The notes beneath the pieces are model-generated. The model was not told the origin of the DNA. It searched no databases and saw only the letters and a program-made list of their open reading frames with translations. 64,000 bases of DNA, from the sequence record OP079919.1, one strand, 5' to 3'. A program made the translations under genes and the position numbers. The stretch's first letter is position 1, and each line of letters begins with the position of its first letter. This document shows, one piece after another, positions 2,553-7,092 of this stretch.

Positions 2553-3254
2553 ATGATAGGAGTTGCTTTCATGGATTCAATAAGCTGGTACGGAAAATTT
2601 AAAGCAGTAACCGAGGATTTGATTCCGGTTGATCTTTTACGGTACTGCTTATGGTCGATCACCTTTAATGACAAAGCGCATGATTTGAATCACGTTTATC
2701 ATGTTTGTAAACAAGGGAACGATCTTGCATTATTACAAGATTACGACGACCACTGGCGAAGCCTAGTATTAGCCGGTTGCCTGCTTCATGACATTGGGTG
2801 TCGTTACGATCGTAAAACCCATCATCTCATAGCCTATGGGTTGGTCTTCGATTTAACCCATCGTTATTGCACCGGACACTATTCGCCGGAAGAGACATTG
2901 ATCATTGCGAAAAGTTGTCTGGAGCACAGAGCAAGCTGGGAGGGTGATTTCAGTCATCCTATTTCAGAAACGGTTGCTCTGGCCGACAGAGGTATTCCTG
3001 ATTTCGAGTTATACTGCAAACGAGCCGTTCAGTTCAGGTTAGATCAAAACCTGACTGAAGATGTTTTGGTAGAAGAAGTTCGCGTTCACATGTTAGACAA
3101 GTTCCTACCTAAGACGGGTTACGTTTGGAAAAACTATCCTGAATTAGGATTGTCTTTATATGAACAAGAATGGAAAGTGTTCCACGATAAACTTAAAGAC
3201 GAAGTTGTCTTTAGAGAGGCTGTACTAGAAGCGTACCGTAAATTAAAATCTTAA
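2553..3254 (+). CDS. HD-domain metal-dependent phosphohydrolase
   Basis: AHDLNH...GCLLHDIG...HH...EH...ALAD matches the H...HD...D pattern of the HD superfamily. Confidence 0.85.
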   Translation: MIGVAFMDSISWYGKFKAVTEDLIPVDLLRYCLWSITFNDKAHDLNHVYHVCKQGNDLALLQDYDDHWRSLVLAGCLLHDIGCRYDRKTHHLIAYGLVFDLTHRYCTGHYSPEETLIIAKSCLEHRASWEGDFSHPISETVALADRGIPDFELYCKRAVQFRLDQNLTEDVLVEEVRVHMLDKFLPKTGYVWKNYPELGLSLYEQEWKVFHDKLKDEVVFREAVLEAYRKLKS

Positions 3255-3311
3255 TCTATATTGTTAACGTCCTCATAAGGGGCGTTAACAATAACCTACG
3301 AGGAAATCATC

Positions 3312-3806
3312 ATGATTATTTTACTTGCTGTTTTTGCTATTATCCTTTGTATTGGTTTTTGTTATAAAAAGATCAATATCAAAAACGACATCGGAATCAA
3401 GGTTAACAACGCCACAAAGATGGTTATCGATATTAACCTTGGTAAAATTAAAGGCGAATTCAAGATCGTTAAACACAGTCGCTGTTTCAAACCAAGAGTC
3501 TCTCCTGGTCTAAATGGATTGGTTTATACCGTCCCTGTGTTTTGTACGTTATCTGAATTCATCACCGGCTTATATTCTGAAGAAATAAGACCTTACGACA
3601 AACAAAAAGATAAACACCTCTTAGACGTCGTCAGAGCCATCGTAGGGGCCGAATTAAAGGACGATGGTATGATTGCCTTATTCGACGACACGACCCTTTG
3701 TGAGACCGTAGAGAGAGCCAGAGAGTCATTTGTGATGAATAAGGATTATTTCTTCTCTGAGAAGGGGTGGAACCGAGGCAATGTTATTGCACCTATCAAC
3801 CTTTAA
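3312..3806 (+). CDS. Hypothetical protein with N-terminal membrane anchor
   Basis: GAGG RBS; hydrophobic N-terminus MIILLAVFAIILCIGFCY followed by KK. Confidence 0.75.
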   Translation: MIILLAVFAIILCIGFCYKKINIKNDIGIKVNNATKMVIDINLGKIKGEFKIVKHSRCFKPRVSPGLNGLVYTVPVFCTLSEFITGLYSEEIRPYDKQKDKHLLDVVRAIVGAELKDDGMIALFDDTTLCETVERARESFVMNKDYFFSEKGWNRGNVIAPINL

Positions 3807-3820
3807 TTAAGGATTTTAAA

Positions 3821-3961
3821 ATGTCTGACATGTTTGACGTGGATCAACTCAACAACCTGAACCTGGAAGCGGTTGAAGAGAAAGTCGAATCTCTTCGTGA
3901 TGGTGGCGGTGAAGTTGTCGAGGCTTCCGATGAATGTGAAGGCGGCGCCTGCAAAATTTAA
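3821..3961 (+). CDS. 46-aa acidic protein ending in an NrdA-like redox tail (ECEGGACKI)
   Basis: AAGGA RBS at 3809-3813, ATG 3821, TAA 3959-3961, then a terminator. MSDMFDVDQLNNLNLEAVEEKVESLRDGGGEVVEASDECEGGACKI; the C-terminus resembles E. coli NrdA ...DDGCESGACKI. Confidence 0.8.
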   Translation: MSDMFDVDQLNNLNLEAVEEKVESLRDGGGEVVEASDECEGGACKI

Positions 3962-3970
3962 AACGCGTAA

Positions 3971-4004
3971 TAACTCCTACTCCCCGCATGGGGAGTAGGA
4001 GTTA
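3971..4004. terminator. Bidirectional terminator between convergent genes
   Basis: 15-bp perfect stem TAACTCCTACTCCCC/GGGGAGTAGGAGTTA with loop GCAT. Confidence 0.85.
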
Positions 4005-4020
4005 ACAGTACTTTTTTTTC

Positions 4021-4917
4021 TTACAGCATGTATTCAGGAGCGGTAACTTTAGCCGCTTCACGAGTCATCGCAGCAAGAGTTCCAGAATCGGTAAGACTCT
4101 GGAGAATCGCCGTAGGCTGCAGGAATCCGGATTCAGCACCGCGACCAGCTGGGTTATACATCGGGAGTTTGCTCAGGAAAGAACGAGCAATCTCTTTAGC
4201 GGCCTGGGTATCGAAATCGATCAGACCGGTGTATTCCATGTTGATGTCACGCATCTGACCAGCTTCGTCTTTGTTACGACGCATCTGGATTTCAACGGTG
4301 TTACGCGGCATGATGCCTACTGCAAGAGCAGCGTGGGCAACATCACGCATATTACGCGTCGGTTCCAGATAAATGTTCGCACAAGAGATTTGGTCGATCA
4401 GGAGATCACCTGGATCGTCGAGGATAACCGCACGAGGGTGACCCAGATCCGGATCGTTCAAACCATACAGAGACCAGGAGCGATGGAGGTTAGTATAAAC
4501 CTCACCTTCGATATCCACGCCAGCATGGTTGATAACACCGAGGGTACGAGTACCGCCCGACGGCACGGAGAATACACGGCCAGAGAAACGCTGTTCTGCG
4601 AATTCGGTCTCGATACGTTCAGAGAGACCGGTGATTTCACGACTACGCGTTTCAAACCAGGATTTCGCCAGTGAGTGGAGGATGTTACCTGCCGGCATAC
4701 GGCTAAACAACGCAGGGGTGCTGATACAGAAGCACCAGGTCTGCTGTTGAATATGCGGATGCTCGGAGACCATGTTGGCGATATTGGGAGCCCAGCCATA
4801 CTGGCCCCCTTGAGGGCCATTCAGAACAGGACGGTCGCCCACGCCGAACGCAGAGTACCATTCAGAACTCCCAGGTACCAGCGTGGTTGTGTTCCTAAAC
4901 GGAGTGTTGCTTGACAT
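4021..4917 (-). CDS. Tail tube protein (phiKZ gp30-like)
   Basis: 298 aa, immediately downstream of the sheath gene in the canonical sheath-tube order of phiKZ-like phages. Confidence 0.8.
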   Translation of the reverse strand: MSSNTPFRNTTTLVPGSSEWYSAFGVGDRPVLNGPQGGQYGWAPNIANMVSEHPHIQQQTWCFCISTPALFSRMPAGNILHSLAKSWFETRSREITGLSERIETEFAEQRFSGRVFSVPSGGTRTLGVINHAGVDIEGEVYTNLHRSWSLYGLNDPDLGHPRAVILDDPGDLLIDQISCANIYLEPTRNMRDVAHAALAVGIMPRNTVEIQMRRNKDEAGQMRDINMEYTGLIDFDTQAAKEIARSFLSKLPMYNPAGRGAESGFLQPTAILQSLTDSGTLAAMTREAAKVTAPEYML

Positions 4918-4932
4918 TTAGAGTCACCTTAC

Positions 4933-7092
4933 TTAGGAGTTAGTGGTATCGAGATCTTGTTCGTTATACGCGGCAAGACTCATGTTCATCATGTACTTAC
5001 CTTTACGGAACCAGACGTTAGCGACGGCGTTCAACACCGCACGACTGCCGGCTCCGGTCTCGTTATAAGTACAGTCAACCCGAAGGTCTTTAAACATGGT
5101 GCCCATACGACGACGAATAGCTGCTTCAGATGTGTCTTTTACCGTTGCCGCGTAAGTCGTAGCGTCAATGGTCGTATCGCCGGACACCAGTGTCCACGCA
5201 TCGGCGACAATCTTCTCAATACAAACCGCAGTGAAGTTAGTGATCAGATCTTTCAGCACAGAATCGTTATCGTCATACACCGTTGGAAGCGCAGGACGGT
5301 AATACTGAGACGTGTTGTACGGACGAAGACTGATACCACCTTCATCGAAGTTATTCGCAGCAGCGTCATCGCCTTCGAAGTCCATGGTCGGAGAATGCAT
5401 CTGAGTGAGGATACGGTTATCACCATGATCCGGAGAATTCACCGAGCTCAGGTTACCACCGCTATTACCGCCAAGACGAGCGAAGAAGTAAGCCAGGTCC
5501 AGCGTTTGCGGGAATTCAAGGCCGGTGCTTTCGTCGATGATCTTAGCATCCCACAGGGAGATAGCCGCACGGGACGCCGGAGTGCCGTAAAGCGAAGATT
5601 CCGGATACAGACGAATCTTAGTCGCCAGAGACTGCATCATGGAATAACGCTGGGCGATGGTATTGTCTTCCAGCCATTCGGAAGCCTGCAGGATCAGAAT
5701 CTGATCTTTGCGGGTGTTCCAGAGCTCGATCAGCGCGTTCTTAATATCCAGGTTATAACCCACATCCCAGATAACAGATTGGCGGTTGCGCGTCCAATCG
5801 TTAACAGTGGACGATTGAGCATAAGCCTGAATATCAGCCAGATACAGAGACTGGGCTACAGTCCAAGCGTCTTTGATACTCAGCTGGTCAATATGGCCGT
5901 TGTTGGTCGCCGGGTCGAAGTTGTAAGTTCCTTCAACCGGAACCGGTGTAGTCCGATCCGCTTTCAGGAACGGAGAGATACCGCCAGCAGCGTCGATATA
6001 ACCGGAGTTAGCGAACGGGTTAGCGTCATCCACCAACATACACGCATAGTACGGAACGTTGGTATGGTTGGTCAGCGTGAACGGGTTCATCTGACGAATT
6101 GGGTTGACGCCCGTTACGTTAACAAGCGCCGATTTACCGGCAGCCAGTTCTGCTGCATACAGCGCCGCACAAACTTCCTGGATGTTCTGATCGTAGACCT
6201 TGACTTCGTAGAACGGAGCAGGGCGCAGAGTCACCTGACGGTTGACGTTAGCGTTGGTGAAGTCACCCACTGCAGTCGCCAGGCTGTAACGAACATCGTA
6301 CTTGTCTTTGGTGTTGAACAGCGTGTACGTTGCCGATTCACCGCCATTAACGTTGGAGAAGAAAGTCGGGACGCCCGTAGAAGATTTTACGTACATTCTC
6401 ATTGAGAACGGGAACACGCCGTATTCTTCAACGAAATCTGACACTGAATCCCAATCCGTGGAAGCATCGAGACCCATGGTCAAACCGTGCAGGTTATATG
6501 CGTCACCAACGCCAGCCGGAAGTTCGAAGAACGGATACTGAGTAAACGTAACTTCTTCCCCATTCACCGTTTCGGTGAACGTCGATTTTACGAGCTTGCC
6601 GTATTCTGGCGTGGTCGGCGCGGTAACGTCGAGCTTAACCAGTTTAACGTAAACGCCCGGCACTGCGGTACCGCCGGTAACAGGGATCAGCTCACCGTCG
6701 TCGTCGAAAAGATAGCTGCCGTCAGTCGCACGCTGATACTGAGGAATAGATGTACCGTTCCCGATAGCGATGGCGTAAGCAACACGAGCTACTACGGTGT
6801 TGGCGGAAACACGGCGTACGCCAAAACCACCCTGACCGCCGGAGGTGATCATCGAGATCAGCCGAGATACCGGGGAGTAGTAAGGGGTGTCAACATCCAG
6901 GATATCGCCGTAAAGATTGGTAAAGTCACTTGAGTTTATGAAACTCTGTCCGAGTTCACCCTTAGGGGTGACTACGGGAATAACCGGGTAATGACAAGGA
7001 TACGTAGGCAGAGACGTTACCGGGTTTAAGCGGCCTTTATCGTCCATACCGTTATTGATGACTTGTCCCGGAATGATTTTTGTAAAGCTCAT
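4933..7092 (-). CDS. Contractile tail sheath protein (phiKZ gp29-like)
   Basis: 719 aa with strongly biased codons. Sheath-like N-terminus (IIPGQVINNG...PVVTPKG...FTNLYG) and C-terminal WDVGY segment; divergent from the baseplate/terminase operon as in phiKZ and SPN3US. Confidence 0.88.
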   Translation of the reverse strand: MSFTKIIPGQVINNGMDDKGRLNPVTSLPTYPCHYPVIPVVTPKGELGQSFINSSDFTNLYGDILDVDTPYYSPVSRLISMITSGGQGGFGVRRVSANTVVARVAYAIAIGNGTSIPQYQRATDGSYLFDDDGELIPVTGGTAVPGVYVKLVKLDVTAPTTPEYGKLVKSTFTETVNGEEVTFTQYPFFELPAGVGDAYNLHGLTMGLDASTDWDSVSDFVEEYGVFPFSMRMYVKSSTGVPTFFSNVNGGESATYTLFNTKDKYDVRYSLATAVGDFTNANVNRQVTLRPAPFYEVKVYDQNIQEVCAALYAAELAAGKSALVNVTGVNPIRQMNPFTLTNHTNVPYYACMLVDDANPFANSGYIDAAGGISPFLKADRTTPVPVEGTYNFDPATNNGHIDQLSIKDAWTVAQSLYLADIQAYAQSSTVNDWTRNRQSVIWDVGYNLDIKNALIELWNTRKDQILILQASEWLEDNTIAQRYSMMQSLATKIRLYPESSLYGTPASRAAISLWDAKIIDESTGLEFPQTLDLAYFFARLGGNSGGNLSSVNSPDHGDNRILTQMHSPTMDFEGDDAAANNFDEGGISLRPYNTSQYYRPALPTVYDDNDSVLKDLITNFTAVCIEKIVADAWTLVSGDTTIDATTYAATVKDTSEAAIRRRMGTMFKDLRVDCTYNETGAGSRAVLNAVANVWFRKGKYMMNMSLAAYNEQDLDTTNS

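Follow-up and report, generated by a model that had tools for sequence, protein, structure and literature searches.

A free-standing copy of the ribonucleotide reductase redox tail in Klebsiella jumbo phage KPN8, joined to a segment predicted to dock on host NrdA

The jumbo phage KPN8 encodes a 46-amino acid protein that, by sequence comparison, we show to be a free-standing copy of the redox-active C-terminal tail of NrdA, the large (alpha) subunit of class Ia ribonucleotide reductase (RNR), preceded by a segment predicted to dock on NrdA where the NrdB subunit binds. Our favoured reading, to which we give a probability of roughly 40%, is that the protein is a two-part module (docking segment plus redox-tail copy) that would act in trans on host NrdA as a docked spare reductant; inhibition of the host enzyme by blocking of NrdB is almost as probable. 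The cell's supply of DNA precursors is set by ribonucleotide reductase, the redox tail of which has been studied only within the enzyme. Neither a detached NrdA tail nor a phage mimic of the RNR tail turned up in our literature search, and the family to which the KPN8 protein belongs (PHROG 10239) is listed as of 'unknown function', in keeping with the statement in a preliminary description of this DNA that no function had been described for such a protein. The finding represents a new variant among the small protein effectors of RNR and points to an undescribed viral route for acting on DNA-precursor supply.

The window analysed here, a stretch of 64,000 nucleotides, corresponds at 100% identity to positions 186,001–250,000 or thereabouts of Klebsiella phage KPN8 (OP079919.1), a 256.6-kb (256,576-bp) member of the Miami group of jumbo phages that carries tubulin-like and split multisubunit RNA-polymerase genes. 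The open reading frame encoding the 46-amino acid protein occupies positions 3821–3961 of the window on the plus strand, stop codon included, running from an ATG at 3821 to a TAA at 3959–3961, and its product, which belongs to a conserved family of small jumbo-phage proteins, contains 13 acidic and three basic residues. Two segments can be distinguished, both on the plus strand: residues 1–25 (3821–3895), the predicted NrdA-docking segment, which is defined by a family alignment and a complex model, and residues 26–46 (3896–3958), the NrdA-tail-like segment, which is delimited by profile and alignment and extends from an R-D-G boundary to the C-terminus. The second segment contains a C-x4-C pair made up of Cys39 (codon 3935–3937) and Cys44 (codon 3950–3952), and the protein ends in an isoleucine.

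The preliminary description credited the gene with a ribosome-binding site and a terminator of its own, and both are readily recognised. A Shine-Dalgarno-like AGGA is located at 3810–3813 on the plus strand, 7 nt upstream of the ATG, and a terminator-like element, to which no strand is assigned, is found at 3971–4019, between the gene and a convergent tail-tube gene. The latter element comprises a perfect, G+C-rich 15-bp hairpin at 3971–4004 (dG –28.5 kcal/mol, z –7.2, with none of 200 shuffled sequences as stable) and a run of eight U residues at 4012–4019; because this run begins 7 nt past the hairpin stem, the element was missed by a simple terminator scan. In the record of phage Miami, a ribosome-binding site, coding sequence and terminator are annotated at the matching places. 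The KPN8 record annotates an alternative start, a GTG at 3767, giving a 64-amino acid product (3767–3961) that overlaps the upstream gene, but the ATG at 3821, and hence the 46-amino acid product, is favoured by the Miami record as well as by the family alignment. On its other flanks the gene is bordered by a preceding open reading frame (3312–3806) encoding a 164-amino acid protein with a hydrophobic N-terminus, for which a Pfam search gave no match, and by the convergent tail-tube and tail-sheath genes.

In the class Ia enzyme, the last ~24 residues of the alpha subunit are disordered and carry the cysteines C754 and C759, which form a CX4C motif that exchanges disulphides with a redoxin and then re-reduces the active site. 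The electron-carrying role that the preliminary description gave to this cysteine pair is thus in agreement with the literature. Of the last eight residues of the KPN8 protein, seven match the very end of class Ia NrdA from enterobacteria, with both redox cysteines in register. This octamer is the same in all 80 NrdA sequences that were fetched from the Enterobacteriaceae and Erwiniaceae (80 species), and four members of the phage family match it at all eight positions. When a profile was built from 13 members of the family, it aligned end to end with E. coli NrdA residues 751–761, again the extreme C-terminus, albeit with an E value of about 1, since the match spans only 11 residues. A further comparison used the C-terminal half of the profile, which scores 16.7 bits against E. 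coli NrdA, second only to the 46-amino acid protein itself, whilst the best score in a local background of 990 stop-to-stop KPN8 reading frames (146,014 residues) is 3.2 bits; ranks three and four in this test are taken by two phage NrdA tails. The near-match to the E. coli tail noted at the outset is therefore well founded.

Likeness to phage NrdA proteins reaches back as far as the R-D-G boundary that marks the end of the folded body, indicating that residues 26–46 correspond to the whole of the flexible tail. Like the E. coli tail (residues ~738–761), the KPN8 protein is acidic and predicted to be flexible, and has its C-x4-C pair at the extreme C-terminus. Unlike that tail, it is joined to no catalytic body: the ten-stranded barrel (Ribonuc_red_lgC) with its active-site cysteines is absent from the 46 residues, which have no Pfam match. 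Two further differences are that a conserved but unrelated N-terminal motif stands in front of the tail and that the carriers checked lack nrdA (see below). There is no likeness at the DNA level between the KPN8 gene and E. coli nrdA; the 3' end of the gene is identical to the ends of host nrdA genes at 23–29 of 33 nt, a figure that is explained by coding constraint alone.

Free-standing homologues were identified by tblastn in 86 phage records, a number that includes a few chance or NrdA-tail matches, the others all being jumbo phages. The jumbo-phage carriers infect Klebsiella, Erwinia, Dickeya, Serratia, Salmonella, Yersinia and Proteus. Among 1.84 billion proteins, 32 clusters were recovered when the profile search was exhaustive; a word-indexed protein search returned five relatives only. 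The match to PHROG 10239 (E = 2e-4, 22.8 bits) aligns residues 4–46 with positions 6–47 of the 47-position profile, and a larger, fused member of the family (P0010) matches the same profile through its C-terminal module. Single-sequence searches of Pfam, NCBIfam and the PDB (phmmer) with the 46-amino acid protein gave no match. Across 45 members, both cysteines are invariant, with a spacing of four residues in 40 proteins and three in the remaining five; the last cysteine lies two residues from the end in every case and the final residue is isoleucine in all but one (44/45). That the cysteines, their spacing, their position at the end of the protein and the terminal isoleucine have all been kept points to selection on the redox pair rather than to decay. 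The conservation in relatives that the preliminary description had proposed to look for by tblastn is thus borne out.

Within the Miami group, the gene is unchanged between KPN8 and Miami (0/141 nt, 100% identity), as against 14 changes in the 495 nt of the upstream gene. Over a greater distance, the last 69 nt (window 3893–3961) are identical at 61 positions to the corresponding gene of Erwinia phage pEa_SNUABM_13 (L001:3998–4066), and in the tail part six codons differ between the two, five of them synonymously. As the KPN8 and pEa_SNUABM_13 genomes are otherwise unlike at the DNA level, this suggests that the tail part was exchanged fairly recently between the two phage lineages. Gene neighbourhoods vary between lineages and consist mostly of hypothetical proteins. 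The Alexandra/JA11 clade, in which the gene is found between those for dCMP deaminase and thymidylate synthase, is the only one with neighbours in nucleotide metabolism. Yersinia phage phiR1-37, whose DNA contains deoxyuridine, encodes a homologue (g117, L010:4959–5114) without the GGG motif. This gene is almost untranscribed in RNA-seq, with values of 3.9, 1.5 and 1.2 where those of its neighbours are in the thousands. The KPN8 gene sequence is present in RNA-labelled wastewater runs, although these say nothing firm about transcription.

Do the carriers of this gene have an NrdA of their own? Searching the whole 256,576-bp KPN8 genome by tblastn with four NrdA/NrdB queries revealed no NrdA or NrdB body, the only match being the 46-amino acid reading frame itself, which extends to the genome as a whole the earlier remark that no nrdA body lies upstream of the gene. 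With the same number of queries, tblastn found neither NrdA nor NrdB in 254 of the 266.5 kb (95%) of the Alexandra genome and no NrdA in the 212.8 kb of Serratia phage PCH45 (MN334766.1). No reductase is listed in the gene table of phiR1-37, and no NrdA body was seen within 10 kb at 26 other loci; beyond single loci, the nrdA check covered the four carriers KPN8, Alexandra, PCH45 and phiR1-37. Since KPN8, PCH45 and, over the part searched, Alexandra are without a phage NrdA, they must use that of the host. PCH45 encodes both the alpha-tail protein and, as a beta-only phage, an NrdB (L119:24783–25889) that is 80% identical to that of E. coli and has a host-like C-terminal tail; this phage thus already invests in supplying a partner for the host alpha subunit. 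KPN8 itself carries two thymidine kinases, a thymidylate synthase and a DHFR, and a crude scan of its genome revealed no thioredoxin- or glutaredoxin-type motif. As a separate observation, many of the phiEcoM-GJ1-like phages of E. coli and Yersinia (~52 kb) encode a host-like NrdB at one end of the genome, beside the endolysin.

What of the N-terminal half? The preliminary description regarded everything other than the cysteine tail as acidic and flexible. The first part of this stands, but the segment is more than a flexible leader: in the family alignment, residues 1–25 are acidic and carry a conserved D-x-x-x-L-x-N-hydrophobic-x-hydrophobic motif followed by a helix, with no sequence likeness to either NrdA or NrdB. 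When its complex with E. coli NrdA was modelled, a check that had also been put forward in the preliminary description, the prediction gave an ipSAE of 0.72 (0.74, 0.72 and 0.71 in individual runs) compared to 0.00 for the best control; in the benchmark, 58 of 80 solved complexes and two of 110 mismatched pairs attained the ipSAE mark. The confident part of the modelled interface is formed by residues 5–31 of the small protein, whereas the cysteine tail (residues 32–46) is placed without confidence.

On NrdA, the predicted footprint takes in residues 311–328, 341–350, 394–405, 586 and 711–723, and the Klebsiella enzyme has the same residue at 33 of the 35 interface positions. Tabulated contacts in the E. 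coli holocomplex place V709, M711, Q712 and K584 of NrdA against the NrdB C-terminal tail, and E314, N322–G324 (including R323), N328 and E397 against the NrdB body. Residues 711–712, 314, 323–324, 328 and 397 are shared between footprint and contacts, with 586 lying near K584, such that the predicted footprint overlaps the NrdB docking site in both its tail- and body-binding parts. Taken at face value, the model predicts docking of the N-terminal half at the NrdB-binding site of NrdA, although it may simply be putting an acidic peptide into a groove that is seen occupied in solved structures. We considered whether the N-terminal motif shares ancestry with the NrdB tail and rejected this on sequence: the profile of the N-terminal part has no match to the E. 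coli NrdB tail and, with –0.6 bits, ranks the tail of a phage NrdB 42nd of 630, and a pairwise local score of 27 for likeness to the NrdB tail is only suggestive.

How might such a protein act? In the scheme that we favour, the acidic N-terminal half would dock, as predicted by the model, at or beside the NrdA groove that receives the NrdB C-terminal tail, and docking would bring the C-x4-C tail copy, the part established by sequence, near to the entrance of the active site. There, the copied tail, once reduced by host thioredoxin or glutaredoxin, would hand electrons on to the oxidised active-site cysteines and so provide NrdA with a second, ready-reduced shuttle whilst the native tail is being recharged. 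Both the reduction of the tail copy by redoxins and its reduction of the active-site disulphide are inferred from the likeness to NrdA. Phages that rely on host NrdA for their deoxynucleotides would by this means keep the enzyme turning over faster. Three observations lead us to prefer the spare reductant: the cysteine pair is strictly conserved, the carriers depend on host NrdA (with one, PCH45, adding an NrdB) and one clade keeps the gene among those for dCMP deaminase and thymidylate synthase. Amongst the options listed in the preliminary description, a trans-acting effect on RNR is the best reading.

The proposed arrangement has a counterpart in the photoRNR chimeras, in which alpha truncated at residue 753 is fused to beta residues 341–375. 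As in these chimeras, the phage protein would, if the complex model is right, bring together beta-tail-type docking and the logic of the alpha tail in one polypeptide at the NrdA active site; however, the chimeras are man-made and retain the beta tail whilst dispensing with the CX4C motif, whereas the phage protein does the reverse and is a separate molecule. By analogy, it can also be likened to thioredoxin, glutaredoxin, NrdH and phage NrdC, small dithiol proteins in the electron path to RNR that are often phage-encoded. It differs from these redoxins in lacking the thioredoxin fold, a CxxC motif and any match in Pfam or NCBIfam, in that its cysteine pair is C-x4-C and located at the C-terminus and in that the redoxins are donors whilst the KPN8 protein copies the acceptor tail.

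If true, a natural detached tail that brings a docking segment with it would represent a novel kind of RNR effector and a ready-made probe of how the tail reaches the active site and of whether re-reduction limits turnover in the cell. It would explain how several lineages of jumbo phage manage without a large subunit of their own, and RNR would join the list of host enzymes on which phages act through a copied short piece of a host protein. It is tempting to go further and to propose that the virus supplies the enzyme with a spare part, allowing phages that lack NrdA to run host RNR beyond the limit set by re-reduction, with anchor plus tail serving in addition as a portable NrdA-targeting module for attachment to other domains. 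We put this wider proposal forward as speculation that is less likely than the spare reductant itself; such a spare part would be unprecedented.

Several points speak against the spare reductant. As modelled, the protein would compete with NrdB and so looks inhibitory; the native tail is tethered and thus present at high local concentration, making the gain from a copy supplied in trans less than obvious; and the phiR1-37 homologue is almost silent. The first of these leads directly to the main alternative, possible though somewhat doubtful in our estimation, that the protein inhibits host class Ia RNR. Here, the N-terminal half would fill the NrdB groove or surface on NrdA and the tail copy would plug the active-site channel or rival the native tail, blocking both radical transfer and re-reduction, with the result that the phage stops host DNA-precursor synthesis or reshapes the pools. 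The modelled footprint, which coincides with NrdB-tail contacts (M711 and Q712, and near K584) and with NrdB-body contacts (E314, R323, G324, N328 and E397), would fit exclusion of NrdB better than it fits a spare reductant. There is also precedent, in that C-terminal peptides of the small subunit are the classical competitive inhibitors of RNR. The KPN8 segment resembles the NrdB C-terminal peptide (residues 360–375) and the inhibitors derived from it in being short, acidic and predicted to lie on the same region of NrdA, but differs in that its motif is internal, has no detectable sequence likeness to the NrdB tail and is followed by a redox tail.

A second precedent is yeast Sml1, to which Spd1, Dif1 and Hug1 are related. 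Sml1, a small inhibitor, acts on the large subunit and prevents its C-terminal CX2C tail from regenerating the active site. Like the phage protein, Sml1 is largely unstructured and binds the large subunit (as predicted on the phage side); by analogy, the KPN8 protein too would affect how the C-terminal cysteine tail regenerates the active site. The two are not detectably homologous, as searches of Pfam, NCBIfam and PDB sequences gave no match to Sml1, Spd1, Dif1 or Hug1. Unlike the phage protein, Sml1 is cellular and contains no copy of the NrdA tail, whereas the cysteine pair of the phage protein is strictly kept, which suggests redox use rather than mere competition. Indeed, a pure blocker would have no need of invariant cysteines, exact spacing or a terminal isoleucine. 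The salvage and thymidylate genes of jumbo phages, exemplified by those of KPN8 described above, would be in keeping with inhibition, but carriers without an NrdA of their own should need that of the host, and the NrdB that PCH45 adds, having a host-like tail, would be blocked as well. Were the protein nonetheless an inhibitor, it would be, to our knowledge, the first natural protein of a bacterial virus to block a subunit interface that has long been pursued with synthetic peptides.

Further clues come from larger proteins that end in the same anchor-plus-tail module, which is found behind two unrelated N-terminal domains. The first, of ~105 amino acids, has a gene of its own immediately ahead of the module in pEa_SNUABM_37 (L015:2587–2913 and L015:2950–3135) but is fused to the module in SA002 (L012:4638–5129) and in four metagenomic proteins; the second, of ~230 amino acids, occurs as a fusion in SPLA10 and three others. 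For neither domain was there a match in Pfam or among PDB folds, their AlphaFold models have pLDDT values of 60 and 70, and a BFVD search with them returned only uncharacterised jumbo-phage proteins. The genes upstream of the module in KPN8 and PCH45 are unrelated to the fused domains. That some phage lineages attach the module to other domains suggests that it may also serve as a portable tag for docking on NrdA, if the complex model holds. Separately, a metagenomic member of 58 amino acids (P0015, L112:368–544) has a cysteine-rich N-terminal extension ahead of the module.

The portability of the module could also be taken to mean that, real as the likeness to NrdA is, NrdA is not its target at all, and that the protein is aimed instead at a factor that recognises the NrdA C-terminus, in defence or quality control for example, or that its cysteine pair forms a metal site. 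Some defences, such as DRT9, do respond to phage RNR activity. We consider this improbable: no factor recognising the NrdA C-terminus is known, two cysteines alone make a poor metal site and the predicted docking on NrdA passes its controls. More improbable again is that the free tail acts as a decoy or sink, tying up host thioredoxin and glutaredoxin or their electrons with no need for NrdA. Whilst the tail is a natural substrate of the redoxins, its last eight residues are almost identical to those of the host and the scan of KPN8 itself revealed no redoxin motifs, a dithiol peptide cannot act as a sink unless an oxidant is present, and the conserved N-terminal motif, the predicted docking on NrdA and the fusions to other domains would all be left unexplained.

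Two remaining readings can be set aside as highly improbable. Split RNR genes occur in phages, and residues 26–46 do align with annotated phage NrdA C-termini, but the lack of any NrdA body by tblastn in KPN8, PCH45 and the part of Alexandra covered, or within 10 kb at the other 26 loci, contradicts both an origin of the protein as the tail half of a split nrdA and the option, entertained in the preliminary description, that a phage NrdA without a tail is encoded elsewhere and uses the protein as its partner. Equally, the shortness of the reading frame, the near-silent phiR1-37 copy and the different start annotated in the KPN8 record might suggest a decaying 3' remnant of nrdA or a spurious reading frame, a possibility that the preliminary description had named as fatal to its proposal, but the family is conserved across unrelated lineages of jumbo phage, the gene has its own start, ribosome-binding site and N-terminal motif, and neither the synonymous differences from pEa_SNUABM_13 nor the identity to Miami is what decay would leave.

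Two minor observations concern the surroundings of the gene. Over window positions 3000–5000, a record described as 'Stenotrophomonas phage BUCTxx100' (OR529409.1) is 97.6% identical to KPN8, and given this degree of identity to a Klebsiella phage, the host label looks doubtful. Upstream, window positions 2553–3254 encode a 233-amino acid protein with a strong match to PHROG 3921, which is of unknown function, and a weak match to the HD domain (E = 0.005, below the Pfam cut-off), so that the protein may be a metal-dependent phosphohydrolase.
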